Of a stretch of DNA of 64,000 nucleotides, positions 4,561 through 64,000 are shown in pieces; within the stretch, counting starts at the first letter, position 1; each line of letters starts with the position of its first letter. The stretch comes from Dicyema japonicum (Eukaryota; Animalia; Dicyemida). The DNA lies in assembly GCA_011109175.1 (NCBI GenBank), contig RDEW01000007.1, forward strand, positions 619,712-683,711. The letters are read 5' to 3'. The notes beneath the pieces were generated by a model, which made no database searches, had not been told where the DNA came from, and saw only the letters and a program-made list of their open reading frames with translations. Made by a program: the position numbers and the translations under genes.

Positions 4561-5698
4561 TGTCCAAGTTATATATATAATACACGAATAAATCTATATT
4601 TTAATTTCCCCTATTATGGTATCAACTAATACAGATATGAGAAGTCGCAAGGTTTTTATGAACGAAAGTCTATTTAATTAAATTAAAAGACTTTACAAAG
4701 TTAAAACAAAAAAAGAGTTGATTGAGATCACCTCGATCAGCAAAAAGAGTTTGAACAGGTGTATTCAAAAAATCGAAAGCTGTGAACTCGAGGATCCTAC
4801 TTTCCGGTGATCTTTACAAGAAAGTAGGCCGAAAAAAGAAAAATAAAGAAATGTTGAATGTCGAAATGAGATCTATTTTTGGAAATGACAACTCGCTGAC
4901 ACAAGTTGGTCTTCAAGAAAAACTTTCAGTGAATCTTTCTAAGTCTCAAATTTCAAGGAATTTAAAGGAGGCCTGCATCACAAGAAAAAGACTCAAGAAA
5001 AGGTCCGAAGTTAGATTGAGTACAGAAAATTTGGCAGAAAGGGGAGTATTTTCATCAAGAATGTTAGGGTTTAGAAATCGGCCGTTATTATTTTTGGATG
5101 AAACCGGGTTTAATTTGCATACATCAATTAATTATGGGTATTCTCCAATTAATACTGAAGCAGTTTTATACCAGCCTAAGTCCAAAGGGAGAAACATCTC
5201 AATGTGTTCGGTTATTTCCATAAATGGAAATGAGCATAATATGATATTCGAGGGGTCTTTTAATCGGGAATCATTTTTAACCTTTCTAAATCAATGTGAT
5301 GAAAAGGGGATATTTACAAATTCTCCTGTTGTTGTGATGGATAATGTTAGATTTCATCATTGTGATGAAATTAAAGACTTCTTTATTAGGAAAAGTGTTA
5401 CAAATGTTATTTACTCCTTATTCACCTGACCTAAACCCAATTGAAAACTTTTTTTCTTGTGTGAAATCTCGCCTAAATGTAATTAGACCAAAAGCAACTG
5501 TAAGAGGAGAATTGCTAAAAATATCGATTTGTTATGAGTGTTCTCGAAACCGAGAATTTGTCCTCATTTTATAACAGATTTTGGGAAAAAGTAATTGGAA
5601 TTAATAACAGATTAATTGAATAAAATACTTTTTTCCTAAATTATTTTCTTAGTATATAACTTGGACATCACATATGGGAATTGGGTCATCATTTATGG
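4381..5698 (+). mobile_element. Tc1/IS630-like DDE transposon, inactivated
   Basis: Transposase from ATG 4637 has an in-frame TAA and two frameshifts; catalytic motifs LFLDETGFN, VVVMDNVRFHH and YSPDLNPIE. Inverted ends GACCCAATTCCCATA..TGATGTCCAAGTTATATA (4541-4575) match 5653-5698; the right end is followed by TA. Confidence 0.9.
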
Positions 5699-6137
5699 TA
5701 CTCCTCAAGGGGACTAACTCTCACCCTTGATCTTTGTCATATATTTGGATACCGTTCTACGTGATTTTCGAAAATTTAATGAACTTAAACATAGAAGGAT
5801 CCAGTTATGCTGATGACGTCTTCAATCGAAAGATGGATCAGCCCTTATAGCCTATTGGAAGTAGCTCACAATGAACTCAAAAATGGTACCTAACCATGAA
5901 TGTCCGCAAAACGGAAACAGTAAACATCAGAATAGAAAGAAGATCGGCTGAACAATGGAGAAAAACCAATAAGTTTAGATCCTCAACTGAGGACAATGTT
6001 CGATTAGCCAAGGAAGCCAAGGAAAATAAGCAGGAAAGCTTTATATAATGTCTACGGCACTGGTCCTCTGAGTCTCGAAATCACTAATTTGAGATGGAGG
6101 CTATTCGGACATATGCTGAGATTGAAATGGATATCCT
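5699..6137 (+). mobile_element. RTE reverse-transcriptase fragment, close paralog of 7961-8395
   Basis: TACTCCTCAAGGGGACTAACTCTCACCCTTGATCTTTG... is nearly identical over ~440 bp to the copy at 7961; contains the YADD motif. Confidence 0.85.
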
Positions 6138-19170: not shown

Positions 19171-19296
19171 GAGTATTAAAATAAAGTCCCAGAAAGTTTG
19201 AATTAATATTTATGTGCTCTCTAAAGAGGAAGAACACTTGCTTCCTAAATAGGAAGTTCCTCAAATGAAAAACAAAAACTACGTAAAATAAGTCAA

Positions 19297-20478
19297 ATGG
19301 ATTTGGTAGCTGCTTTGAAGAATCGTGTTAAATCTTACAAAAACGACGATTTTTACGGAAAGTTTAACCACTATTATGGGGTCACACTGCTGGTCTTAAT
19401 ATCCGTGATCATCTCCACAAAAAACTTAGTGGGGGACCCAATCCACTGCTGGTGCCCAACACACTTTACGAGTAATCAAATTTTATTCATTTTAGGCGAT
19501 ATGGTGAGATATGCAGAACAGTCTTGTTTTACCGGGGGAAGGTTCTACTTCAACTCGCCTGTAAAGGAGGACAAATTGGAATTCGTTATATCGGGGGAGT
19601 TTTTCCACTGGATGATTGTGATTACAATGCTTCTTGCCTTAATGTATCGACTGCCGTATATTCTTTGGTGTCGCACGTGTTCAGTTAGCGACATTAACGT
19701 TAACCAGATTATTGAACTGTCAATCAAATGTGGAAATGTTGACTCTGAAGAGAATAAATCGAAGGAATTCAGCACTTTATTGGAGTATTTCGACAAATAT
19801 AGAAACTCGAGAATGCAGATGGATTGCGAGGGACTTCCAAAAAATAAAATTTTAAAATTTATTCATTTCCACACAAAAAAATTGCAGTCCATTTCATCAA
19901 TGTATATTTTGGTCAAATTCATGTACTTGGTGATCACGTGGTCTCAGATTGCCATTATAGAATATTCTGTTATATGGAAGACAAGGAGGAGTTTCAGCGA
20001 AATTATGTTTTGGGATTTCATTAAAGTCTTCAAGAGCGTAGAAACAACGTTGTTTCCGCGATCTGTTCTGTGTAAATTTGACTCCAAGGAATTGGGTCAC
20101 ATTGAGACTCCCCGAACGCACACAGTTGAGTGCATTCTCCCCATAAATCAATATGCACATATTCTCTTTGCTGTGTATTGGCTTTATCTCCTCTTTGGGG
20201 GTATAATCAACTTTATTGGGATTCTGAAGTGGATTTGGTACCTCTGGTTCAGATTTGTCCACCAGGGGTACATGATTTCACTTCTGGGAGGGAAAGAACT
20301 CAATTCTCATAAGAAATTTTTTATTAACTCATATTTGTGTTATGACGGCATTTTTGTAATTCGATTGGTGGCGGACAACACAAGTGATCTTGTTGTGAAG
20401 AAACTGGTCTCCAAATTGTTCCATAAATATACGATGACCCATTCGGAGTTCCCCAAGCCTTATGACTTTGATATTTGA
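19297..20478 (+). CDS. Innexin (invertebrate gap-junction protein), ~385 aa after removing one probable 24-nt in-frame intron
   Basis: DDFYGKFNHYYGV, GDPIHCWCP, YAEQSCF, FFHW (canonical YYQW), FPRSVLCKF, TVECILPIN and YCYDGIFVIRLV-like DG motif; four hydrophobic segments. GTAATCAAATTTTATTCATTTTAG at 19472-19495 restores normal spacing in extracellular loop 1. Confidence 0.95.
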   Translation: MDLVAALKNRVKSYKNDDFYGKFNHYYGVTLLVLISVIISTKNLVGDPIHCWCPTHFTSNQILFILGDMVRYAEQSCFTGGRFYFNSPVKEDKLEFVISGEFFHWMIVITMLLALMYRLPYILWCRTCSVSDINVNQIIELSIKCGNVDSEENKSKEFSTLLEYFDKYRNSRMQMDCEGLPKNKILKFIHFHTKKLQSISSMYILVKFMYLVITWSQIAIIEYSVIWKTRRSFSEIMFWDFIKVFKSVETTLFPRSVLCKFDSKELGHIETPRTHTVECILPINQYAHILFAVYWLYLLFGGIINFIGILKWIWYLWFRFVHQGYMISLLGGKELNSHKKFFINSYLCYDGIFVIRLVADNTSDLVVKKLVSKLFHKYTMTHSEFPKPYDFDI

Positions 20479-21349: not shown

Positions 21350-24300
21350 GGTATTTTTCTTGTGCCGTATTTTTCTTCAGGTTATTCTTTCTCCCACAAT
21401 TCTTTTAACTAACTTCCTCCATGCTCCACGGTTACTGGCAATTATTCTGAGCGTATCCAGATCATCTCCTGTTTTTAGCTTTCGTCCTACATTGGTCAGG
21501 TCCTTGTGTAGAACCTTTGGCAAAGTTATGCGAGATCTTCCACGGAACGAGGAATTCACTTCTGGGCAGAAATAGTTCTCCAGTGCTATTTTAGCAGGCG
21601 TCATCTGGCTCATCCGAAGGATGTGACCAAACAGACGACATCTTGATTCAAAGATATCCAGACTCAATGGTCTTGTATTACATACTTTGTATAGATTCTT
21701 GTTTGTAATTTTTTTGGCCAGTTGATGCCAAGCAACAGTCGGAGTTGTTTACGATGGAAGGCATCTAGTTTGTCCATTACCATTTGTGAGACTCCCCAGG
21801 TTGCAGCGTTGTACATTAGGACCGGTTTGGGTTGAGCTGGTGACGTGGCTCTATTGCACACATGTCTTTTTCGTGCTTTTCTTATGGATCTTTCACTATT
21901 AGCTCGTTCAATGTAAGAGGATTAAAGTCGGATACTAAAAGAAGAAATTTATGCGTTGATCTTGAATCGTACAAGGTAACCGTGGCGTGCTTAAAGGAAA
22001 CGAAAGTAAAAGGCGGACTAGATGAAATCAACAGTGATTTCCGACTAATTCGGCACCCTTCGAATTGCCTACACTACGGCATGGGATTTGCAATACAAAA
22101 AGAACTGAACAATCGAATCCACAAGACGTGGAGGGTGAGCGATAGAATATGTGTTTTACAATTAAAATACGGTGAAAGGAACAATTCCATAATCTCCATT
22201 ATTAATGTATATGCACCAACTTCGGTGAGAGTATCAATCAATGGAGACTAACTAGACGACTTCTATTCCTCCCTGTCGCAACTATATGCATCTTTGAAGA
22301 CATCGTTCATGACATACATTGCTGGAGATTGGAACGCAAAGGCAGGACGTGGGAGTAGTCACGAAGAATTCATGGGAAGCCATGGAAGAGGGATCAGGAA
22401 CCAGTCAGATAATCGCTTACTAGAATTTTGCAATACATTCAAACTATTTCTATGCAATACTGCTTTCAGGCACTCAGCAAGACATAAGACGACATGGAGC
22501 TGCTACTGAAAGGACAAATCTGGGACTATCAAGCCTATATATAACCAAATAGATTACATTATCTGAAAACACAAGGCACTGCTATCAGATTCTCGGAGCT
22601 ACAGTGGGACACTAGTAGATAGTGATTCGTTGTGGCACGTTTCTTTTTCAAACGATATTTTGGGGTTTCCAAAGCGGCTGGCATGAGGATATCTGAGGGG
22701 AGGTTCGCAGTAGAGCAACTCTGCATGGTGGGACCGACTCGGGAAAGCTATCAAAATACATTGAGAGAAAAGATCAGACAGTGGAATAAAGAAAAAATGC
22801 CTGGGGAGCTGTGGCAAGACACCATCGATGCAATAAAGTGCGCGGCCCATTCAACAGTCGGAGTAAAACCGAAGCATTTCAAAGACACTATGACCACGAG
22901 CGTGAAGAACTATCCAAATTGCAGAGGAGCCTACGTTTACATGTCGAAACCTGTCAGGACCAGGCAAAGGAACACATTCTAAGAGTCATGCGGACCAAAC
23001 GAGAAAATAAAGGAAAATAAACTTGTTGGAATGGCTAAAGAAATAGAAAGGCTCAAAAACGGAGCGCAGATGTTCAAGGCTGTTAACCTACTACATAGAG
23101 ACACGCAGTCATCAAAAATCACAATACATGATCAGTTTGGAAAGACTATTATTATTAAGGCACTTTCACGAAAGCTATAATGATTATAGCCCCGCATGTG
23201 CAACACTCAAAGAAACAATATTTATAGTTAGTCTTTTCCATCTTCCTCTGTCGAATGCGAGTCTTAAAGACTATGTTAAACAAAAATCAAATTTTATCGG
23301 CCATATCCAGCCATTATCAGCAGACCTTCAATCAAAACCACGGGGAAAACATCAAACAATTCGATGGTGAAGCACGAGAACTAAATATTCCGATAACGAT
23401 TTGGAAACAAATAAAGCCCTGGACAAACTGAACAACAATAGAGCTGCTGGCCCTGACAACATAAATGCAGAACTTCTCAAATATGCACTAACCGAGATCT
23501 CTGAACTATTAACTAAGATATACAACAAAACATTCAAATACAACTCACCCCTGGATGTGGGTAATGGCACACTAATTGCACTACAAAAACCAGGCAAAGC
23601 TAAGGGCCCTTAACGAATTTAAGACCCATCGTACTATTGACGACTCTACGCAAGACACTATCACTTATAGTGCTGAACAGGATTGGACCTGACATCGAAA
23701 ACTTTCTCTCTCACGGTCAAACCGGATTCAGGTCAGGGAGATCTACAGCTGATGTGGTCTGGGGACATCGATGGCTTTGTGCAACACATCAAAAGTACAA
23801 GGGGGCTACTGGCATCCTTGGCATGGACATGTCCAAAGCCTTTGACTCTATACACAGAGGGAGATTTTTGGATATCTTGGAGACGTTGGTTGACGAGGAC
23901 AGTGTCAGAATGATCCGTCTATTACTTAACAACTCAGCTAAGTGTACGTTTTGGAAATTTGGAGTCTGTCCCATTCGAGACAACGTTCGGGGTACCGCAG
24001 GGAGATTCCATGTCACCGGTACTTTTTGTGACATATCTGGAGGCGGCATTCAGAGACTTCAGACTATTAATTGTCGATTTACCTCAAACTGAAGTGATTT
24101 ATACAGATGATATCGACTATATATCCAGCGACGAGAAAACATCAAACTATATACGGACAAGGATGCCAGTTGTGCTAGAAAAATGGTTCATCAAAATCAA
24201 TACGGAAAAGACGGAGACAACTACCATACGCCGTGAATTAACCCGAACTGATGAAAATGGAGATACTGTAAAAATTTGGGGTCGTTGCTCGGAGACTCTG

Positions 24301-24418
24301 AGGATATCACTAACATGAAGATGTTGGCCGTCGCGGCCTTAGAAAAATGGGAGTAGTCTGGAATCATCGTAAAAAATTAGCACACAATTACGTGTAAGAC
24401 TATACAACAACTTTATTA
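21350..24418 (-). mobile_element. Full-length RTE retrotransposon with inverted 5' portion (3' part minus 21828-21350; 5' part plus 21829-24418)
   Basis: The plus segment carries the 5' end, APE and RT and stops at RLYNNFI (24417). The minus segment starts at KPVLMYNAATW (21828) and runs to the RTE C-terminus; the two join seamlessly. Confidence 0.88.
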
Positions 24419-41299: not shown

Positions 41300-44217
41300 A
41301 TGGCAGATTTATTAGACGGAGCTACTGATGACTGGTATCGTATTGGAAGTGAAAAATTTTACCAGTAATTATATATATCTCAATACATAGAAAGATTCGC
41401 AAATATTCTTTCAATTGGAGCTACAATTGTCCTTTCACGAGAAATTTTGTAATTCCGTCGTGCTACGGAGGACCAATTGCAATTGCAGTCCCAATCAAAG
41501 GAACTGAGGGAGGTCTCACTGTTCATTTTGTAAATAACTCTGGAGTTTCCTACAGAGTTAAGAAAAGAGTTTCTTAGCTGTTAATACATAGATAGACCTC
41601 CAAAAAACAGTTAAAATGGGGTGGACCGTAAACTATGAGTTTGTCTCCGTCTCTGCTGACGGGGAAGTTAAAATATTCAACATAATAAGTTCTAAGTGTG
41701 CTGTTAATTCCTCCCTATCAGTTTGACTTGCAGTTGACGTAGGCTGTTATTGATAAGAAAAAAGAGAAAATAATGGATGCCCTAATTTTTAGGAGACACA
41801 ACAGACATACTGGTATTGTGCTCCTCTCAAGCTCTTCTAACCTTTATTTAATCCACAATATACATTCAACACGTCTGGACAAACTCCCAAAAGTCCCTGG
41901 TATATATATTTATGAATCTGAGACATGAAAATACCCCCTTGCTGGACAGTCGGGGAGGAAAAGGACTTAAATGTGCTTATTGCTTCAAATATGGGACTAT
42001 ATTCTCCATATCCTCTCAGTGAGAAGATTGTATGTTTTCTTATTGATATTAGTCAATTGGAAGTGAGTCTTCTGTTACCAAGAACATAGTTTTGGCAGCC
42101 TCTTCTTTCACGGGGAATCGGATTGCCTTGTACAACTCTGATGGAATTTTATGGATTGGGACTGCCAATATGAAAAAGACGATACTTCAGTTGACCGCAT
42201 CACTGCCGTGTTCCCCCTCAGAACTTGCTTGGTACACATGGTTTGGTTATTCTAGGTGTGGTAACCATGTGGTTGCCATATTATGTGGTTCTGTCCTGTA
42301 TCTGTACGCGGTTGACGGAGAATTCACTCAGTTTTAGATTCCGTTATTTTGTAGGTTTTTTGTGGATCCAAAGACAATATTGGTGAGTGAGATTGACTCT
42401 CTCAGATTACTAATGCCAAACAGACAGGAAATCATAGTTGAGTTGGATGGTATGTCCCTTGGTTACTTGAAGCTCAGGTTGTGGAGACACTCAGGATTGG
42501 TTCTACTGCTCCCTCCATTTATTTACTGCGTTCTAGACTGTCTTCAGATGACCAGGAATCTGTCACAAATATGCTCATGATTAAAGACCAATTAAGCACA
42601 GCTGCCCACGAGTGCTCAAAGGCTTCATTGCACGTGCAAAACACACAATTACAGAGATGGCTACTACTTGTACTTGTTTGTATACAAACAGGCGGCTACC
42701 ATTGGTAAATCTTCATGCAACGACGTGACTGACCCTGATGAGATTAAACGGTGTGTTTACAGTATTAGACTGATCAACACAGTAAATCAGGACTACATTG
42801 GCATTCCCATCACATATAAACAGTAATAAAGTGATAATATCACAGATTGGAGGACATTACTATTGAACAGTTCATAAATATGCTCACTAATTTGCACTTG
42901 TTTCAATTGGCTGTGGAAATATCTAGATTCTTTAAATTGCCTTTTGATAAGTTTGAATTGAACATACTAATGGTGTGGGCCAGTGATAAAGTTTGGGGAT
43001 ATTTTACTGTTAGGTGGTCGAGCCAAGTCCTGACAAAGTTATTTCCGCGGCAATCCGTAACCGCCTCTTCAACGTTCCCGACATGCCGTATGCCACTATT
43101 GCTGCAAAGGCTCTCAAATGTGGACGAAGTAAACTGGCATTGGATGTTTGTTTGGTTTTATTTCAGTTGGTGGATTATGACAAATCCCCCTCCAGACAGG
43201 CCCTTCTCTTACTAAAAATGGATAAACACGTGGAAGCTTTGAGAAAGACTAAAGATTGTTATGACTACGAGTTGAGTAGATGTGTTGTGTCAGAAGATAG
43301 TGTACAAGATTGTTATAAAGAATATGAAGCACAAGTTAAACAAGGAAATGTTTTTCAAAGACCTGTCTCAATTCCCAGAAGCTGTGAACTACTATCTCCG
43401 CGTTTAGGGAGTCATAATTTGTAGTACTGCCAAAGTATGGGAGATTACAAGAGTATGTTATACGTGTATGAAATGCAGGACAACCATAAAGAGATTGCTT
43501 ATTGGAAGATAAGACTGTGCAGTACTGTGATTATTACGGTAATTTGTAGGACAAAGATCAGGTCAGAAAACTACTGGAAGAGGCAGCAGATTCCTTTGGT
43601 AGAATTGGAAGGGACTTTGAGAAAAATGTATGCTGTAAAAATATCAATATAGGAAGTGAAAATGCAGCAGATATTAATGAGGGAATCAAAGCAATTGTAT
43701 TCTGATGATGTCAACTCTGTTAATGACCTGTTTCGTTCCCTATTTGAGAAGAACAATGTCCAGGCAGCTGAAAAAATGAGAAATGTGTTTAAACTAAGCA
43801 ATAAACGGTATACTTTGTTTTAAGTTAGGTGGTTTATTTTTATGATTGATTATTTATCGAGAATGATGAAGTGGACAGAACTTACCAATCTTGTAAAGAG
43901 TAAGAGAACTCCACCTTGTGGTTATATGGTACAACTGTCTGTTTAAGGTTAGCCCTTTGCACGTGCCTTCATGAAAGGGGGACAAATTGTAGTAGCTCAG
44001 CAAATAATAAGCAAAGCGACGGTGGGAGAGAAAGTAAAATTCTATTTGGAATTTGAGTATGGTGTTGTAATGTTTTAGAATGTACGATAATGCGGCTGAG
44101 TGTGCTTTCAAGTCTGATGGGGATAAGGATTACGTTGAATTGGTGTATGACCAATGCAGGAGGAATAACAAAATTCTTGTTTTTGAGGAATTAAAGGCTA
44201 AATACGGAAACAATTAA
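41300..44217 (+). CDS. VPS16: Vacuolar protein sorting 16 (HOPS/CORVET core subunit), ~20 introns of ~21-26 nt
   Basis: Spliced frame reads DWYRIGSEKFYQK, YGGPIAI, MGW, LAWCGNH, IRLINTVNQDYIGIPITYKQ, PYATIAAKALKCGRSKLA, AEKMRNVFKLSNKR and RTPPCGY; the first 14 introns traced (e.g. 41365-41390, 42232-42255, 43146-43166) needed no indel correction. Confidence 0.95.
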
Positions 44218-44289
44218 TATTTTACTTTTTATTTTAATTATGGTGTCGACTAGGTTTTTATTTCTTAAAATCAAATCAATTTAATGTAA

Positions 44290-45560
44290 TACCGTTGTTA
44301 TGGAAGCAAGCCAACATCCGACCTATACTGAAACCTGGAAACCTAAGGAAGATCCAGCATCATTTAGACCTGTGTCATTGTTATGTTCCATATCGAAAAT
44401 CCTGGAAAGGCTTGTGCTTGGGAGAATCAAGGCTTTCTTACCAGAAAAGGATTTTCAACACGGATTCAAGAGCGATTGTTCTACATCAACGTACCTACAG
44501 AAATTAACCAACTTCATTAGAGATGGTTTTTCAAACAAACCAAGGCATTTGAAACAGTCTTATGTTCCATTGATATTAACAAGGCCTTTGATTCTATTTC
44601 GAGAAAAATATTATCAAAGAAAATTTTCCAGTCCGAGATCCCGGGGAAGCTTAAACTTTGGATAACAAATTTCTTAAGTGGACGAAGGGACGTGTATGCC
44701 TCGGAGGACTGAAATCAGTCTCACGTCTTCTCCCAAACGGTGTCCCCAAGGATCTCCTTTATCCCCGCCTTATTCAATTTATACCTGGCAGACCTCCCGA
44801 CACCGGAATCCAATAACGATGTTCTACTCATATGCGGACGACATTGTTTTGGCCTCGCGTGATCGGGATATCCAAAATGCTACAGAAAGATTACAAATAA
44901 ACCTGGACCGACTCAACGCCTGGGTAATGAAGAACCGACTCACGATAAATTCCAGAAAGTCGGTCACGTCTATGTTTACTTCGGACAAAAGGTTGGGGAA
45001 GATGACTGCCAAGTTAAAATTGGACAACATTGAAATCCCCTTCACCAAATGTCAGAAGATCCTGGGCGTGACACTGGATACACACCTATGTTTGTCACCA
45101 CACGTGGCAAACATTGTTCTGAAGTGCGAGAAGAGGATCAATGTATTAAAATGTTTATCTGGAATATGGAAGACAGGTACCCACCCAGTCTTGATGAACA
45201 TTTACAAGCAATACATCGAACCATGCTTCTCGTACGCGTGTGCTTCGTGGGGACCTTCATTATCATGGACGAACACTAAGAAGATTGAGGACGTTCAAAA
45301 GAAGGCTTTCAGAATGACGGAGCGGTGGTCTTGTGGGAGACATAAGAACCGGACCGACTACTCTGGAGGCCCTCATTAAACAAAACTCCGGCATGCGGGA
45401 AGGTGGCCCTGCAAATACAGTCAGCCGCCCTGTACGAGCTTGTGTGGGTACGAGGGAGGAGCACCGGGAAAGAATGAGGATTTTGGCGGAGCGCATCGGG
45501 ATCACGTGATAGTTAGTTTTGGTTTTACCGTGGATTTGGATGTTAAATAAATAAAAATCA
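44290..45560 (+). mobile_element. Ingi/Vingi-like LINE, 5'-truncated (RT + 3' end)
   Basis: SFRPVSLLCSISKILERL, QHGFK, PQGSPLSP, YADD, LGVTLD, YKQYIEPCFSYACASW and C-terminal ERIGIT*. Confidence 0.88.
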
Positions 45561-45652: not shown

Positions 45653-47366
45653 TGTCACAGTCCATACATGCAAGACGACGTACATGCGAGATTTATCACA
45701 AAATACAAAAAAAATTTCTTAGTAAAACTTTCATTGAAAAAATTATTAATAATATTATTATTATTATTTAAGCCAAAGAAACACCGTCTTAACCAATAAC
45801 TAATATTCAGGTGATCCCGGCATCTCTCAATAATCGGGCCATTTTTTCTCGATGCTCCGACTGTGATCCCACGCATTTTCTATACGGACGGGGGTCTTTT
45901 TCCTTTTCTCTTCTGAAATTGCCTCCAGTTGCCTCTATGATAGACTCGAGTGCTCTGGGGGCAATTTCTTTATCTGTATATTTTTCTAGTAACTTTTTGC
46001 TTTGACTGGATATCTTGAATTTTTGTTAGGTTCGTTGCCGACAGGTTAGATCCCATGCAGCACATGCATAGCCTATTGTTGGCTCGACATACTGTTTGTA
46101 GAGGGTCCCGATACCTGGCGGATAAATTCCTCCACAGTTCCAAAGGAAGGCCTTTACAAAATTGATCTTTCCTTTGCACAGGTTGAAATATGATAGATTC
46201 CACATGGGCTGAGAAGCAGGGAAAGTATCAAAAGTTACTCCCAGTACTTTGCGATTTCTTTTGTGGTATAGGTACTCCATTTAACGTGACATCAAGTTGT
46301 TTGCGTTCCCATCTTTCTATTCTTAGTAAATAGAGTGACTGCTGACTTTTCGGAACATGCATTTAATCGATTCTCGCACAACCATCCAAATATGTTATTT
46401 AGTATTCCTTGTAGTCTTTCCTTAGCATGTTCGACGTTTACGTCTCTAGATGCGACAACTATGTCATCGGCATAGGAAGTAGTATGTCATTATTATTCAT
46501 AGGTACGGGGAGATCACTCAAAAACAAATTAAAAAGGATTGGTGACAGAGGAGATCCTTGGGGTACACCATTGGGTAATAATCCCGATCTGGAACTCTTG
46601 TTTCCGACGATACTTTCCCTCGGCGTCCACTTACGAAATTTGCTAACCATAACTTTAATGGTGCATCAATTTTTGTCAAAATATTTTTCGTATGAGGATC
46701 TTCCTTGGGACAGAGTCGAAAGCTTTTTGAATATCGATCGTACATATGACCGATTTTTCCTGTTTTGGCTTGTTCTTGTGTCCTTCAGTTATGAACTTCA
46801 TTAATGTTGTTAGGAAAGAGGTTGTTGATAATCCTTCCTTGAAGCCATGTTGGAATGTACTTTGTGGGAGAAAAGGGCGAATAATTTTAGGACCAGTTTT
46901 CTCCAGGATCCTCGACAAAACACATATAAGGGAAACTGGTCTGTAAGAGCCGGGATCGTTCTTCGGTCTTCCCGGCTTCAATATTGGTCGAATTTTTGAT
47001 AGTTTCCACAAAGTCGGTATGGTATTTCTAAACCAAGAAAATAATGAATATAACACAGTTCATATTATTCAAGCTAAAAAATTGTGACCTTTGAAATTTT
47101 TAAGATGTGTGTTTTTTAAATTGGATCACTTTTATGATTACTAACATTACCTGAGTTAAGGTTAGGGTTGATTTAAATAAATAAAAATAATACATAATTG
47201 ATTAGAATTTGTTGTCATGTTGATTTTCAAGTAATTCCTATAATCACAACTAAGGGTATAAAACTTATAAATTTCAGATATTTAATTAAAGAATTCCAAA
47301 AATGTGATTTTTATTGAAAATTATGAATCTCACATGTACGGCGTCTCGCATGTATGGACGTGACAA
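45653..47366. mobile_element. TTAA-flanked element with ~45-bp TIRs (piggyBac-like non-autonomous) containing a nested LINE
   Basis: TGTCACAGTCCATACATGCAAGACGACGTACATGCGAGAT (45653) is the inverse of ATCTCACATGTACGGCGTCTCGCATGTATGGACGTGACA (ends 47365); TTAA at 45649-45652 and 47367-47370. Confidence 0.75.
45770..47070 (-). mobile_element. Ingi/Vingi-like LINE, 5'-truncated, nested in the TTAA element
   Basis: WKLSKIRPILKPGRPKNDPGSYRPVSL, IDIQKAFDSV, GVPQGSPLSPILFNL and LYKQYVEPTIGYACAAW. Confidence 0.88.
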
Positions 47367-55620: not shown

Positions 55621-57093
55621 TAGCTGTTAACTGTTTTCTCTTATTTAGGTCAAATTAGAGAAAATAGCTCAAACAAAAGTATGACTTATCTGTGAATAGT
55701 AAAAACAGAATTAATTTTGTACAACGACGTGACACGTTTCTTGATTAGGAAATACTCGATGGAAATATATAGAAAGCAGAATATACACGGGGATGAATCC
55801 CGTCTGAAGTTCCTCTCATTAGATGTATATCAAAGGAAGGGGAAGAGGAGGAACAGACAAAACAAGTAGAAAATTTAAACCAATTAGCCACTTAGAACCA
55901 CATGATGCCACGTGGCGCAAATACGCTGACAGCTTTTCATAAAAAGTAAGGCAGTAGAGTCCATGGAAAAGATAACTATTAATAAAAAGTTTTTTGATTT
56001 CCTTGGTGATGTAACATATGCTATTTTTGATATGGAAAACTCTGGATTTCTAGTCCCACGTTTCTTACAAAAAACTCGGAAACCTAAGGCTGAGAGCCTG
56101 CTCAGGGAACCATCGTGAGTGATACTAGTCATTCGGAATAGATTTTCCCTGCAATCCTGAAGGGAAATAGCAATGTAATACGAGGGAGGATGCTGCCTTC
56201 CAACTCAGTATTTGTTCAACTATAATGTGGCATCAATAGCCTCTGAAAGATGATGCCCACCTTACGCATTATGGAGAAACAAATTAACCATAAAGGCATA
56301 TTTTGTGGCCAATAGAATTATATAAAAATAATTAGAGAAATTAAAAAAAGTATGGTTAAATCGAGGTTCGATTGCAAATAATTCACCGATTCCCCAAAGT
56401 GTGACAATCAGTTCTTAAGTTAACCAAAATTCAAATAAAAAACAATTTCGTAGATAATTTGATTATAGATACAAGTCATAAGTACTTGGGTGAATAATTT
56501 GATAAAATAAAAATTAATGAAAGAAAATTAAAATCAAAGGAAAATAAAAAATTTAATTAGAAATCGATTAAAAAACAAAAAAAATCACACAAATGAAGTT
56601 ATTTGGTAAACCACAATAATTTAAAAAATTCAAATTAAAAGTAAAAAAAAAGTGACAAAAACGAAATTATATTAATAAATGATAGGATTATGGCAATTGA
56701 AGCTTTTTAAGAAGTGATTTTTTAACTCTGTCAAATAAGAAAATAAAAATATCAATGAAAATAAATAATAATTAGGTAAAATAAAAAGTAGCAAAAAACG
56801 AGATGAAAAAAGATTATACAATTTTTTTAAGTGACAAAAAGAAGATATTAATTCAACATAAGGGAATTTGACATCAATAGAATAAATTCTGATTAAAAAA
56901 CTAAATAAAAATAAAAAATGATGATTTAATATATAAATAATAATAATAAAAAATAGAAAATAGAAAGCAAGATAAAAATTGCAGAAAATTAGAAAAAAAA
57001 TGAAACCAAGAAATAGATTTAAATTAAAAAACCACAAATTACAAAACAATAAGCGGAAAACGAAGAACATAAAAAGGGATAGAATAAGGAAAA

Positions 57094-60000
57094 ATGATGT
57101 GGATCGTAGTGATATGTAAGAAAATAAATTAATCAAATAGTAAGTATACAAATAACAATATTAACGAATGAAATAAAACTACAGATCCAACAAGTTCATT
57201 GACAGGTTTGAGTTTTGATAACAGTGAGCATATAATACAGGGACAACCACGAATAACCAAACTACAACAACATCTAATACAAGCTCGACTTCAATAAACA
57301 GAGTACAAATAAACCAACTACTTCTTTCCATGGTTTTGTATTTGATGACAAAAAGCATCGAATAATGGTACTACATCTAATAAGCAGACAACAATAGCAA
57401 CAAATAAAAGCACAACGTCAGATAACCAAGACTACAAATTCACAAACTACTTCTTATTTTGGTTTTGTTTTTGATGACAAATAGCATTGTATAATGGGAC
57501 TACATCTAATAACCAGATAACAACGTCAACTAACACAGGCACACCTTAAATAACCAGACAACATCGACAACTAAAACAGACACACAACGACCAACAACCA
57601 GAGTACAACTGCAACAAACAAAGGAATAACGACCAATAACATAACTACGACAGCCAATAATACAAGCACTACCTGGAAGAACAATGCAACAACAGCAACT
57701 AACACAGGCTCTACGTCAAATAACCAGACTACAACTTCAACTAACACAGGCACCACGTCGAATAACCAGACTACACCAGTAATTTCTACAAGAACAACCT
57801 TCAATAATCAGACTACAAATAAACCAACCAATTCTTCTTCAGGTTTGCTTTTTGATAACAAATAGCACATAATAATGGCACTACATCTAATAACCCGACT
57901 ACAACTTCAGATAACACAGGCACCACGTCGAATAACCAGACTACATTAGTAATAACTACAAGCTCAACCACCAATAATCAGACTACAAATAAACAAACTA
58001 CTTCTTCTTCAGGTTTACTTTTTGATAACATATAGCATATAATAATGGCACTACCTCGAATAACCAGACAACAACTGCTAATAACACAGGCACAAGCTTA
58101 AATAACAGACAACAACAGCAACGAACACAGGCAGTACGACCATTAACCAGACTACAATAGGAACTAATACAAGAACCACGTCTAATAAACAGATTACAAC
58201 AGCAACAAACACAGTCTATACGTCAAATAACCCGACTACAAATTCAACTAACATAGGCAACACCTCCAAAAACCAGACTACACCAGTAATTACTACAAGC
58301 ACAACCTCCAATTATCACACTACAAAAATACCTATTACTTCTTCTTTAGGTATGATTTTTGATAACAAATAGCATCGTATAATGGGACTACATCTAATAA
58401 GCAGACAACAACGTCAACTAACACAGGCACTACCGCGAATAATCAGACAACACCAGCATCAAATCCAAGCACTACCCTCAATAACCAGACAACAACATCA
58501 ACAAATACAGACACTACATCAAATAACCAAACAACAACTGCATCTAACACAGGCACAAAATCCAATAACCAGACAACAACAGCAACTAGCACTAGCACAA
58601 CCTCTAATAACCAGATAACAACGTCAACCTACACAGGCACTACCGCGAATAATCAGACAACAACAGCATCAAATCCAAGCACTACCTCCAATAACCAGAC
58701 AACAACATCAACAAATACAGACACTACATCGAATAACCAAACAACAACTGCATCTAACACAGGAACAAATCAATAACAATACAACAAGAGCAATTAACAC
58801 AGGCTCTACGTCAAATAACCAGACAACAACTGCTAATAACACAGGCACAAGCTTTAATACCCAGTCAACATCAGCAACTAACACATACACAACGACCAAT
58901 AACCAGAGAACAACTGCAACAAACAAAGGAATAACTACCAATAACAAAACTACGACTGCCAATAATACAAGCACTACCTCGAAGAACAATGCAACAACAG
59001 CGACTAACACAGGCTCTACGTCAAATAACCCGACTACTACTTTAACTAACACAGGCACCATGTCGAATAACCAGACTACACCAGTATTTACTACAAGCAA
59101 ACCTCCAATAATCACACTACAAAATTATCCAACAACTTCTTCAGGTTTGCTTTTTGATAACAAATAGCATATAATAATGGCACTACATCGAATAACCAGA
59201 CAACTATAGCAACTAACACAGGCACAACGACCAATAACCAGAGTACAACTGCAACAAACAATGGAATAACAACTAATAACAAAACTACTATAGCCAATAA
59301 TACAAGCACTACCTCGAATAACAATACAACAACAGCAACTAACACAGGGACAACGACCAATAACCAGAGTACAACTGCAACAAATAATGGAATTACGACC
59401 AATAACAAAACTACTACATCCAATAATACAAGCACTACATCGAATAACCAGACAATAACTGCAACTAATACAGGCACTATCTCGAATAACCAGACAACAA
59501 CTGCTAATAACAGGCACAACCTTAAATAACCAGACAACATCGACAACTAAAACAGACACAACGACCAACAACCAGAGTACAACTGCAACAAACAAAGGAA
59601 TAACGACCAATAACATAACTACGACAGCCAATAATACAAGCACTACCTGGAAGAACAATGCAACAACAGCAACTAACACAGGCTCTACGTCAAATAACCA
59701 GACTACAACTTCAACTAACACAGGCACCACGTCGAATAACCAGACTACACCAGTAATTTCTACAAGAACAACCTTCAATAATCAGACTACAAATAAACCA
59801 ACCAATTCTTCTTCAGGTTTGCTTTTTGATAACAAATAGCACATATAATGGCACTACATCTAATACCGACTACAACTTCAGATAACACAGGCACCACGTC
59901 GAATAACCAGACTACATTAGTAATATAATACAAGCTCAACCACCAATAATCAGACTACAAATAAACAAACTACTTCTTCTTCAGGTTTACTTTTTTGATA

Positions 60001-63000
60001 ACATATAGCATATAATAATGGCACTACTCGAATAACCAGACAACAACTGCTAATAACACAGGCACAAGCTTAAATAACCAGACAACAACAGCAACGAACA
60101 CAGGCAGTACGACCATTAACCAGACTAACAATAGGAACTAATACAAGAACCACGTCTAATAAACAGATTACAACAGCAACAAACACAGTCTATACGTCAA
60201 ATAACCCGACTACAAATTCAACTAACATAGGCAACACCTCCAAAAACCAGACTACACCAGTAATTACTACAGCAAAACCTCCAATTATCACACTACAAAA
60301 ATACCTATTACTTCTTCTTTAGGTATGATTTTTGATAACAAATAGCATCGTATAATGGGACTACATCTAATAAGCAGACAACAACGTCAACTAACACAGG
60401 CACTACCGCGAATAATCAGACAACACCAGCATCAAATCCAAGCACTACCTCCAATAACCAGACAACAACATCAACAAATACAGACACTACATCAAATAAC
60501 CAAACAACAACTGCATCTAACACAGGCACAAAATCCAATAACCAGACAACAACAGCAACTAGCACTAGCACAACCTCTAATAACCAGATAACAACGTCAA
60601 CCTACACAGGCACTACGCGAATAATCAGACAACAACAGCATCAAATCCAAGCACTACCTCCAATAACCAGACAACAACATCAACAAATACAGACACTACA
60701 TCGAATAACCAAACAACAACTGCATCTAACACAGGAACAAATCCAATAACAATACAACAAGAGCAATTAACACAGGCTCTACGTCAAATAACCAGACAAA
60801 CAACTGCTAATAACACAGGCACAAGCTTTAATACCCAGTCAACATCAGCAACTAACACATACACAACGACCAATAACCAGAGAACAACTGCAACAAACAA
60901 AGGAATAACTACCAATAACAAACTACGACTGCCAATAATACAAGCACTACCTCGAAGAACAATGCAACAACAGCGACTAACACAGGCTCTACGTCAAATA
61001 ACCCGACTACTACTTTAACTAACACAGGCACCATGTCGAATAACCAGACTACACCAGTATTTACTACAAGCACAACCTCCAATAATCACACTACAAATTA
61101 TCCAACAACTTCTTCAGGTTTGCTTTTTGATAACAAATAGCATATAATAATGGCACTACATCGAATAACCAGACAACTATAGCAACTAACACAGGCACAA
61201 CGACCAATAACCAGAGTACAACTGCAACAAACAATGGAATAACAACTAATAACAAAACTACTATAGCCAATAATACAAGCACTACCTCGAATAACAATAC
61301 AACAACAGCAACTAACACAGGGACAACGACCAATAACCAGAGTACAACTGCAACAAATAATGGAATTACGACCAATAACAAAACTACTACATCCAATAAT
61401 ACAAGCACTACATCGAATAACCAGACAATAACTGCAACTAATACAGGCACTATCTCGAATAACCAGACAACAACTGCTAATAACACAGGCACAACCTTAA
61501 ATAACCAGACAACATCGACAACTAAAACAGACACAACGACCAACAACCAGAGTACAACTGCAACAAACAAAGGAATAACGACCAATAACATAACTACGAC
61601 AGCCAATAATACAAGCACTACCTGGAAGAACAATGCAACAACAGCAACTAACACAGGCTCTACGTCAAATAACCAGACTACAACTTCAACTAACACAGGC
61701 ACCACGTCGAATAACCAGACTACACCAGTAATTTCTACAAGAACAACCTTCAATAATCAGACTACAAATAAACCAACCAATTCTTCTTCAGGTTTGCTTT
61801 TTGATAACAAATAGCACATAATAATGGCACTACATCTAATAACCCGACTACAACTTCAGATAACACAGGCACCACGTCGAATAACCAGACTACATTAGTA
61901 ATAACTACAAGCTCAACCACCAATAATCAGACTACAAATAAACAAACTACTTCTTCTTCAGGTTTACTTTTTGATAACATATAGCATATAATAATGGCAC
62001 TACCTCGAATAACCAGACAACAACTGCTAATAACACAGGCACAAGCTTAAATAACCAGACAACAACAGCAACGAACACAGGCAGTACGACCATTAACCAG
62101 ACTACAATAGGAACTAATACAAGAACCACGTCTAATAAACAGATTACAACAGCAACAAACACAGTCTATACGTCAAATAACCCGACTACAAATTCAACTA
62201 ACATAGGCAACACCTCCAAAAACCAGACTACACCAGTAATTACTACAAGCACAACCTCCAATTATCACACTACAAAAATACCTATTACTTCTTCTTTAGG
62301 TATGATTTTTGATAACAAATAGCATCGTATAATGGGACTACATCTAATAAGCAGACAACAACGTCAACTAACACAGGCACTACCGCGAATAATCAGACAA
62401 CACCAGCATCAAATCCAAGCACTACCTCCAATAACCAGACAACAACATCAACAAATACAGACACTACATCAAATAACCAAACAACAACTGCATCTAACAC
62501 AGGCACAAAATCCAATAACCAGACAACAACAGCAACTAGCACTAGCACAACCTCTAATAACCAGATAACAACGTCAACCTACACAGGCACTACCGCGAAT
62601 AATCAGACAACAACAGCATCAAATCCAAGCACTACCTCCAATAACCAGACAACAACATCAACAAATACAGACACTACATCGAATAACCAAACAACAACTG
62701 CATCTAACACAGGAACAAAATCCAATAACAATACAACAAGAGCAATTAACACAGGCTCTACGTCAAATAACCAGACAACAACTGCTAATAACACAGGCAC
62801 AAGCTTTAATACCCAGTCAACATCAGCAACTAACACATACACAGACCAATAACCAGAGAACAACTGCAACAAACAAAGGAATAACTACCAATAACAAAAC
62901 TACGACTGCCAATAATACAAGCACTACCTCGAAGAACAATGCAACAACAGCGACTAACACAGGCTCTACGTCAAATAACCGACTACTACTTTAACTAACA

Positions 63001-64000
63001 CAGGCACCATGTCGAATAACCAGACTACACCAGTATTTACTACAAGCACAACCTCCAATAATCACACTACAAATTATCCAACAACTTCTTCAGGTTTGCT
63101 TTTTGATAACAAATAGCATATAATAATGGCACTACATCGAATAACCAGACAACTATAGCAACTAACACAGGCACAACGACCAATAACCAGAGTACAACTG
63201 CAACAAACAATGGAATAACAACTAATAACAAAACTACTATAGCCAATAATACAAGCACTACCTCGAATAACAATACAACAACAGCAACTAACACAGGGAC
63301 AACGACCAATAACCAGAGTACAACTGCAACAAATAATGGAATTACGACCAATAACAAAACTACTACATCCAATAATACAAGCACTACATCGAATAACCAG
63401 ACAATAACTGCAACTAATACAGGCACTATCTCGAATAACCAGACAACAACTGCTAATAACACAGGCACAACCTTAAATAACCAGACAACATCGACAACTA
63501 AAACAGACACAACGACCAACAACCAGAGTACAACTGCAACAAACAAAGGAATAACGACCAATAACATAACTACGACAGCCAATAATACAAGCACTACCTG
63601 GAAGAACAATGCAACAACAGCAACTAACACAGGCTCTACGTCAAATAACCAGACTACAACTTCAACTAACACAGGCACCACGTCGAATAACCAGACTACA
63701 CCAGTAATTTCTACAAGAACAACCTTCAATAATCAGACTACAAATAAACCAACCAATTCTTCTTCAGGTTTGCTTTTTGATAACAAATAGCACATAATAA
63801 TGGCACTACATCTAATAACCCGACTACAACTTCAGATAACACAGGCACCACGTCGAATAACCAGACTACATTAGTAATAACTACAAGCTCAACCACAATA
63901 ATCAGACTACAAATAAACAAACTACTTCTTCTTCAGGTTTACTTTTTGATAACATATAGCATATAATAATGGCACTACCTCGAATAACCAGACAACAACT
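57094..64000 (+). CDS. Secreted Thr/Asn-rich mucin-like repeat glycoprotein, 3'-partial
   Basis: ATG 57094; a 25-nt intron (57116-57140) yields signal-peptide-like MMWIVVILSIQITILT. Then 14-aa repeats (e.g. NTGTTSNNQTTTAT) in exons separated by 23-nt phase-1 introns (57206, 57333, 57462, 57843, 58013, 58350, 59145, 59817, ... 63768). Scattered 1-2 nt indels differ between repeat copies. Confidence 0.88.
57531..64000 (+). repeat. ~1.98-kb tandem super-repeat, ~3.3 copies, built from 42-nt units
   Basis: Equivalent intron donors at 57843, 59817, 61792 and 63768 (spacing 1974, 1975, 1976); each unit has 4 exons and 4 introns. Confidence 0.96.

Follow-up and report, generated by a model that had tools for sequence, protein, structure and literature searches.

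Giant genes assembled from hierarchical tandem repeats, with symmetric exons that allow in-frame variation, are known from the Balbiani-ring genes of Chironomus and from nebulin. Classical PTS (Pro/Thr/Ser) mucins, such as MUC2 and the TcMUC proteins of Trypanosoma cruzi, combine a signal peptide with long Thr/Ser-rich repeats for which disorder and glycosylation are predicted. Dicyemid parasites are reduced in the extreme, to about 30 cells and about 5,000 annotated genes. The flagelliform (Flag) silk gene of spiders, credited to Hayashi and Lewis in 2000, reportedly consists of iterated exon-intron modules whose introns are conserved at least as well as the exons, which is said to reflect concerted evolution of the modules. 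Here we describe a locus of Dicyema japonicum, a parasite of the octopus kidney, that runs from position 57094 to the end of a 64,000-nucleotide (nt) stretch of contig RDEW01000007.1 (assembly GCA_011109175.1, positions 619,712 to 683,711, forward strand), referred to below as the window. With a probability of about 0.8, this locus is an expressed, lineage-specific gene that arose through nested duplication and encodes a secreted and heavily glycosylated mucin-like protein of great length.

In concept, although not in family, its nearest analogue is SmPoMuc of Schistosoma mansoni, likewise a mucin-like secreted protein of a parasite, encoded by tandem genomic units of exon plus intron that are kept homogeneous (PMC2576457). 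SmPoMuc owes its diversity of lengths and isoforms to repeat number, recombination and alternative splicing (PMC2576457). Its units of about 1 kb each carry a single 27-bp exon, are separated by microsatellites and are accompanied by a conserved C-terminal part of 13 exons (PMC2576457), whereas the Dicyema gene has exons of 147-774 nt holding 1-16 repeat units, introns of 23 nt and an additional four-exon level. No homology to SmPoMuc was found by a word-indexed search (E ≤ 0.001) or by phmmer, and a C-terminal domain would lie outside the window. Flag silk differs in being a Gly/Pro-rich structural fibre with kilobase introns that is neither Thr/Asn-rich nor from a parasite. Most repeats of the Balbiani-ring genes sit within giant exons, and nebulin serves as a filament ruler inside the cell; the compositions and functions of both are unrelated to those of the Dicyema gene, which had no homolog in either protein search and is not a member of the SmPoMuc, Flag silk, Balbiani-ring or nebulin families. 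In contrast to classical mucins, its repeat contains 1.9% Pro and 22% Asn and is split by many introns instead of filling one large exon, and in the available part Pfam gave none of the domains associated with mucins, such as VWD or SEA. We found nothing published on surface or secreted glycoproteins of dicyemids; the genome paper makes no mention of mucins, and the one paper in which 'Dicyema' and 'mucin' co-occur has an unrelated topic.

As we envisage its origin, a half-unit of 7 amino acids (aa) would have been doubled into a 14-aa unit with the consensus NTGTTSNNQTTTAT. Such units would then have been grouped into a module of one exon and one 23-nt intron, in which the head (Ala-x) is fixed, the penultimate unit has 15 aa and the tail is Ser-rich, and four such exons would have formed a block of 1.98 kb that was itself tandemly amplified. 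The blocks are near-identical, either through recent amplification or through concerted evolution. Any array intron that was retained would run into an in-frame TAG, and the protein product may act as an extended disordered coat or in secretion.

The super-repeat array holds these four-exon blocks (exons a to d) as follows.

57843-59816, plus strand: super-repeat copy 1, with introns at 57843-57865, 58013-58035, 58350-58372 and 59145-59167
57866-58012, 58036-58349, 58373-59144 and 59168-59816, plus strand: exons a, b, c and d of copy 1
59817-61791, plus strand: super-repeat copy 2, the richest in indel errors (about 12)
61792-63767, plus strand: super-repeat copy 3, the cleanest copy
61815-61961, 61985-62299, 62323-63093 and 63117-63767, plus strand: exons a, b, c and d of copy 3
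63768-64000, plus strand: start of copy 4, comprising an intron, exon a, an intron and the opening 41 nt of exon b, beyond which the gene leaves the window

The period of the module is 1974-1976 nt and, with three full copies, a truncated module before them and the start of a fourth after them, the window contains 3.3 modules; counted from copy 1, the four-exon module is repeated 3.1 times. Exon lengths in copy 3 are 147, 315, 771 and 651 nt; exon c lacks two bases at 62843 and one at 62978, and reaches 774 nt once these three are restored from copies 1 and 2. Read in phase 1, these exons yield 49, 105, 258 and 217 codons, 629 in total, with zero stops. Every module exon fits a template of 2 aa + n × 14 aa + 15 aa + 17 or 18 aa, with n = 1, 5, 16 and 13, and so do the three exons upstream of the array (exons 3-5; n = 0, 0 and 6). 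The 14-aa unit itself consists of two 7-aa halves (N-x-x-T-T-x-x), which were detected by Tandem Repeats Finder (TRF) as 21-nt periods; additional repeats of three and of five units occur within exons, and exons c and d have a homologous tail in common. All exons are in phase 1-1 with lengths that are multiples of three, and any one of them could therefore be skipped or duplicated without a break of the frame. The window contains about 2,170 codons of the gene, whose frame has not closed by position 64000. An earlier note on this DNA had proposed the exon template with these values of n, a four-exon unit of about 1.98 kb and 629 aa in at least 3.3 copies, and phase 1-1 exons of lengths divisible by three after repair of dropouts; the template parses all module exons, the period and copies agree with the proposed unit, and the corrected exon lengths confirm the phase, so that the three levels described in the note hold exactly.

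The note had also taken the Thr/Asn frame to encode a protein, and the variation between units bears this out. Across the 35 regular units, codon positions 1, 2 and 3 had entropies of 0.48, 0.58 and 1.09 (Mann-Whitney p = 5e-5), and the pooled between-unit ratio of nonsynonymous to synonymous differences (pN/pS) was 0.43 in the Thr/Asn frame versus 1.5 in both shifted frames. The shifted frames hold 12 and 66 stops, as against none over the 629 codons of the Thr/Asn frame, which uses all four Thr codons and both Asn codons. The Thr/Asn reading frame is under purifying selection; a DNA satellite would not show this codon-position signature.

Spacers separate the exons at 14 predicted boundaries of the array; thirteen are 23 nt long and one, in copy 2, is 24 nt in the assembly, and their sequences conform to GT[AT]T[GA][CA]T(n)GATAACA[AT]ATAG. 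All 14 end in an in-frame TAG, as phase 1 and a length of 23 nt make eight codons of which TAG is the last. Upstream of the array, introns 1 and 4 also hold in-frame stops, and introns 2 and 3 have none. A Vps16-like gene in the same window (41400-44100, plus strand) has its exons split by GT..AG introns of 21-25 nt (e.g. 42991-43013 and 43146-43166), and its Pfam Vps16_C match gains 7 extra residues exactly where one 21-nt intron is read through; 23 nt is thus an ordinary intron size for this genome. Among animals, introns of less than 30 nt have been reported solely in D. japonicum and in myxobolid myxozoans (PMC13644364). The array spacers are ordinary ultra-short spliceosomal introns of the genome. 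In tiny-intron genomes, a premature stop upon intron retention is reported as a general constraint tied to nonsense-mediated decay (PMC2911113, PMC11334263); the generality of this constraint would make the in-frame TAG a matter of quality control and not a dedicated truncation switch.

Contigs of four public sequencing runs (X1, X4, X5 and X6) were aligned on 56700-59460. X1 and X4 come from one sample, X5 from another (2017, labelled 'DNA?'), and X6 (2015) is labelled as a different organism. X1 and X4 are genomic, since two haplotypes cover the non-coding flank and all introns are kept. X5 shows zero cover of the upstream flank (56700-57350) and of every intron. Its contig 22 (depth 890) matches 58825-59195 and omits exactly the 23 nt of the c-to-d intron at 59145-59167, an omission that accounts for 890.3 of 890.3 depth in X5 as against 0 of 2034 in X1 and 0 of 35077 in X4. 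Contig 18 of X5 stops 3 letters beyond the end of exon b, the point at which a fork in the assembly graph would be expected were exon b followed either by exon c (CATCG...) or by exon d (CATAT...). A GT..AG joint from 58349 to 59168, by which exon b is connected to exon d and exon c is skipped, has a depth of 497 in X5 and is absent from the DNA runs. At a variant end resembling that of exon 4, X4 continues into GTATTGA... and X5 directly into the next exon. Apart from 0-1 deviating letters, the cDNA-like contigs agree with the corrected locus. X5 behaves as cDNA, and it is from this behaviour that we infer its RNA nature. Spliced transcripts across the 23-nt introns of the earlier note are accordingly not lacking, given that contig 22 of X5 is joined across 59145-59167 at full depth, and the exon skipping that it envisaged is supported by the one b-to-d joint, seen in X5 only.

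The assembly as deposited breaks the reading frame repeatedly, and the pattern of these breaks is informative. Aligned with one another, the three copies show about 21 indel columns, almost always with the indel confined to one copy, as against at most 5 columns of substitutions; private indels together with scarce substitutions point to unpolished long-read consensus error, not decay. The assembly of the LINE-rich (long interspersed nuclear element) genome of D. japonicum was merged from PacBio and Illumina data (PMC6736024). In copy 1, the X1 and X4 contigs carry the majority state at 58105, 58766, 58770, 59099 and 59121. Three further positions (57174, 57292 and 57428) lie in the single-copy 5' part, and there, too, the short-read contigs disagree with the assembly, by up to 100% of depth: an extra A behind 57174 is found at 424.8 of 424.8 depth in X4, and one behind 57292 at 22.4 of 22.4 and 413.8 of 413.8. 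The single-copy result matters because contigs can mask a rare variant inside a multi-copy array. Over 56700-59460 the X1 and X4 contigs do not show the frame-breaking indels to be real, and the listed indels of copy 1 and of the 5' part are supported as assembly errors. The single-base dropouts that the note had regarded as restorable are private to single copies and contradicted by short-read contigs in these two parts.

With these corrections the 5' end of the gene reads as follows.

57094-57115, plus strand: exon 1 (22 nt), which opens with ATG ATG... and begins the hydrophobic leader (from the sequence and the gene model)
57116-57140, plus strand: intron 1 (25 nt, GT..AG), with an in-frame TAA upon retention
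57141-57205, plus strand: exon 2 (65 nt as assembled, 66 nt with the read-supported extra A behind 57174), which finishes the leader MMWIVVILSIQITILT and continues with NEIKTTDPTSSLT
57206-57228, plus strand: intron 2 (23 nt), free of in-frame stops
57229-57332, plus strand: exon 3 (105 nt with the extra A behind 57292), template n = 0 (2 + 15 + 18 aa)
57333-57355, plus strand: intron 3 (23 nt), free of in-frame stops
57356-57461, plus strand: exon 4 (105 nt once one base is dropped at 57428), template n = 0
57462-57484, plus strand: intron 4 (23 nt), with a terminal in-frame TAG
57485-57842, plus strand: exon 5 (357 nt after fixes), template n = 6

The ATG at 57094 is preceded, 15 nt upstream, by an in-frame TAG. 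The short-read contigs supplied the corrections of this part (an A added behind 57174 and another behind 57292, one base removed at 57428 and two at 57580); an extra A at about 57543 was taken from copies 2 and 3 and is supported by no listed read row. In the gene model, the corrected sequence forms an open frame from the ATG through five exons in phase 1 and straight into the array. Exon 5 is the truncated first module of the array, because its start resembles exon c and the part from about 57537 onward is the tail of exon d. After one added base the N-terminus reads MMWIVVILSIQITILT/NEIK..., slightly unlike the reading from the raw assembly. Its hydropathy (nine-residue window) is 2.3-2.9 over residues 1-15 and hydrophilic beyond, a profile that looks like that of a short signal peptide. 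The leader, read by hand in exons to which no RNA contig extends (exons 1-2), comprises a hydrophobic stretch of about 15 residues and then a polar region, and has no basic n-region. Directly upstream of the ATG, 56000-57090 is very A-rich (AT skew about 0.3, GC 30%) and likewise contains assembly indel errors (56894, one A to be added). At 56745-56916, X1 and X4 each yield two haplotype contigs at about half depth each, which differ by 8-9 single nucleotide polymorphisms (SNPs) and a 3-nt indel; the sample is therefore heterozygous or pooled.

The 629-aa module is composed of 39% Thr, 22% Asn, 12% Ser and 1.9% Pro. Thr and Ser together make up 51%, so the repeat is mucin-like in Thr/Ser only and does not share the Pro richness of classical PTS mucins. 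Each unit has one conserved N-Q-T sequon. No homolog of exon d was found by a word-indexed protein search at E ≤ 0.001, nor any match to its antisense open reading frame (ORF) by a word-indexed search or to a 78-aa ATG ORF by exact-protein look-up; Pfam gave no family even at E ≤ 1, and the ESM Atlas gave only unrelated clusters with scores ≤0.79. Exhaustive phmmer returned 31 matches (best E 1.5e-28), which on inspection were unrelated proteins with 7- or 14-residue repeats (NPGPLSSDQSDVLV, NQGTNSN, TTANNAK and similar) and hence reflect periodicity and composition alone. A single-sequence AlphaFold2 model of exon d had a mean predicted local distance difference test (pLDDT) score of 39.8, a predicted template modelling (pTM) score of 0.25 and no residue above 70, which is weak evidence either way. 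Judged from composition, the best reading is an extended, disordered, secreted or surface protein that would be heavily O- and N-glycosylated. Secretion and glycosylation are sound inferences from this composition and the hand-read hydrophobic leader; a role as host-contact coat or adhesin is speculation.

Three other explanations were weighed against this gene. The array might be a non-coding AC-rich minisatellite or satellite whose open frame and GT..AG spacers are by-products of low complexity, and its strong strand skew (GC skew -0.45, AT skew +0.44), its high copy number by depth, a second frame that stays open for 140-180 codons and the lack of homologs would all suit that view. A satellite would nevertheless have to account for a Thr/Asn frame that alone is free of stops over 629 codons and alone has a synonymous excess, for exon lengths that are all multiples of three in a single phase, for an ATG and hydrophobic leader joined in frame through five exons, and for 23-nt spacers precisely removed in cDNA-like contigs; it is already largely refuted and we give it next to no weight. 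It is improbable, although less so, that the gene family is real and this locus a decaying pseudogene with genuine frameshifts, the spliced RNA coming from an intact paralog elsewhere. The roughly 21 frame-breaking indels of the assembly would then be true mutations, and the variant contigs of single-copy depth with other 5' junctions (57428 to 59152 and 57532 to 58631) as well as the missing cover of exons 1-3 in the cDNA-like run would fit. The profile of the indels, private to single copies with substitutions almost absent, is nevertheless that of consensus error; short-read contigs overrule the assembly in the single-copy 5' part at up to full depth, and the cDNA-like contigs fit the corrected locus almost to the letter (0-1 differences). 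A folded Thr-faced beta-solenoid of 14-residue turns, of the ice-binding or mineral-binding type, would replace the disordered coat and not the gene, and the strict 7/14-residue periodicity with its conserved Thr columns, together with the short strands that the AlphaFold model sets at 7-residue intervals in its first 100 residues, is what such a fold would lead one to expect. The low confidence of that model (weak evidence, as a single-sequence prediction) and a repeat devoid of hydrophobic or Cys core positions speak against it, one conserved N-x-T sequon per unit and 51% Ser+Thr fit glycosylated disorder, and we consider a solenoid unlikely.

Several points weigh against the expressed, secreted mucin-like gene that we prefer. 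The run that carries the splicing evidence is labelled 'DNA?' and is taken as cDNA from its behaviour; the evidence consists of assembled contigs and not of reads, and holes in coverage prove nothing. X5 has no cover of exons 1-3 or of exon a (57816-58001, depth 0), which leaves the 5' model without RNA support; the missing exon a may have been skipped or may be a mere hole. Contigs lose rare variants, and a true indel in 1 of about 20 array copies could escape. The transcripts might derive from another copy elsewhere, identical or paralogous, and the C-terminus is unseen, with the 3' end of the gene beyond the window. Since no homolog was found, function is argued from composition. Sequons are not enriched either, with 54 N-x-S/T observed per 629-aa module versus 68 ± 5 in shuffles; because they are fewer than in shuffles, their density follows from composition and not from a selected 'ladder'. 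An N-glycan ladder as an enriched feature was rejected on account of this depletion.

The length of the gene can be approached through word depth, which was 414-501 for super-repeat contigs and 22.4 for the unique 5' exons in X1, and 5129-5836 and 414, respectively, in X4. This ratio suggests 12-22 modules, a figure to be taken only as a lead because summed contig depth is not copy number. The word 'giant' of the earlier note draws on the roughly 2,170 codons of the window and on this depth ratio. Were all modules at this locus, the gene would span 24-44 kb and encode about 7,500-14,000 residues. We further entertain, as a doubtful extension, a single gene of about 12-22 modules and 7,500-14,000 residues that would rank among the most abundant transcripts of the parasite, with exons skipped combinatorially and module number varying between individuals. 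Its product would be a coat of variable length and glycan content for living in, or attaching to, the cephalopod renal sac, and would constitute a mucin system independent of known families, in an animal lineage with almost the shortest introns.

In some contigs of single-copy depth, the region of exons 4 and 5 at 57391-57532 is joined to the array at other points (the 57428 to 59152 and 57532 to 58631 junctions named above); these may represent a second allele, or else a paralog whose first module is different, and possibly a structural polymorphism. X6 contains intron-containing pieces that are 99-100% identical to the locus, at depth 2-4, over 57755-57942 and 58986-59230; they may stem from parasite DNA carried into a library made from the host.

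A repeat glycoprotein of this length and with high expression would be a concrete candidate for the zone of contact with the urine and the renal epithelium of the host, and its gene is of a kind that would be lost to standard gene finders and to repeat masking. The locus illustrates cleanly, in nature, how a repeat protein can grow at several nested levels by means of ultra-short introns and symmetric exons. In long-read assemblies of such genomes, real genes can be concealed in stretches that look like satellites and are riddled with indels.

The window as a whole is animal DNA with a GC content of about 38%, and its ORFs are in the standard code. A ciliate origin with reassigned stop codons, suggested by the intron size, was rejected in view of an innexin gene, RTE/LINE reverse transcriptases and these standard-code ORFs. 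It is repeat-rich, with a DDE_3 transposase ORF and several RTE/LINE-like reverse-transcriptase fragments (4755-5426, 21844-24315, 44285-45376 and 46679-47059). An innexin ORF of 409 aa lies at 19249-20475 on the plus strand (Pfam PF00876, E 5.5e-44) and is intron-free despite the many tiny introns elsewhere in the genome.

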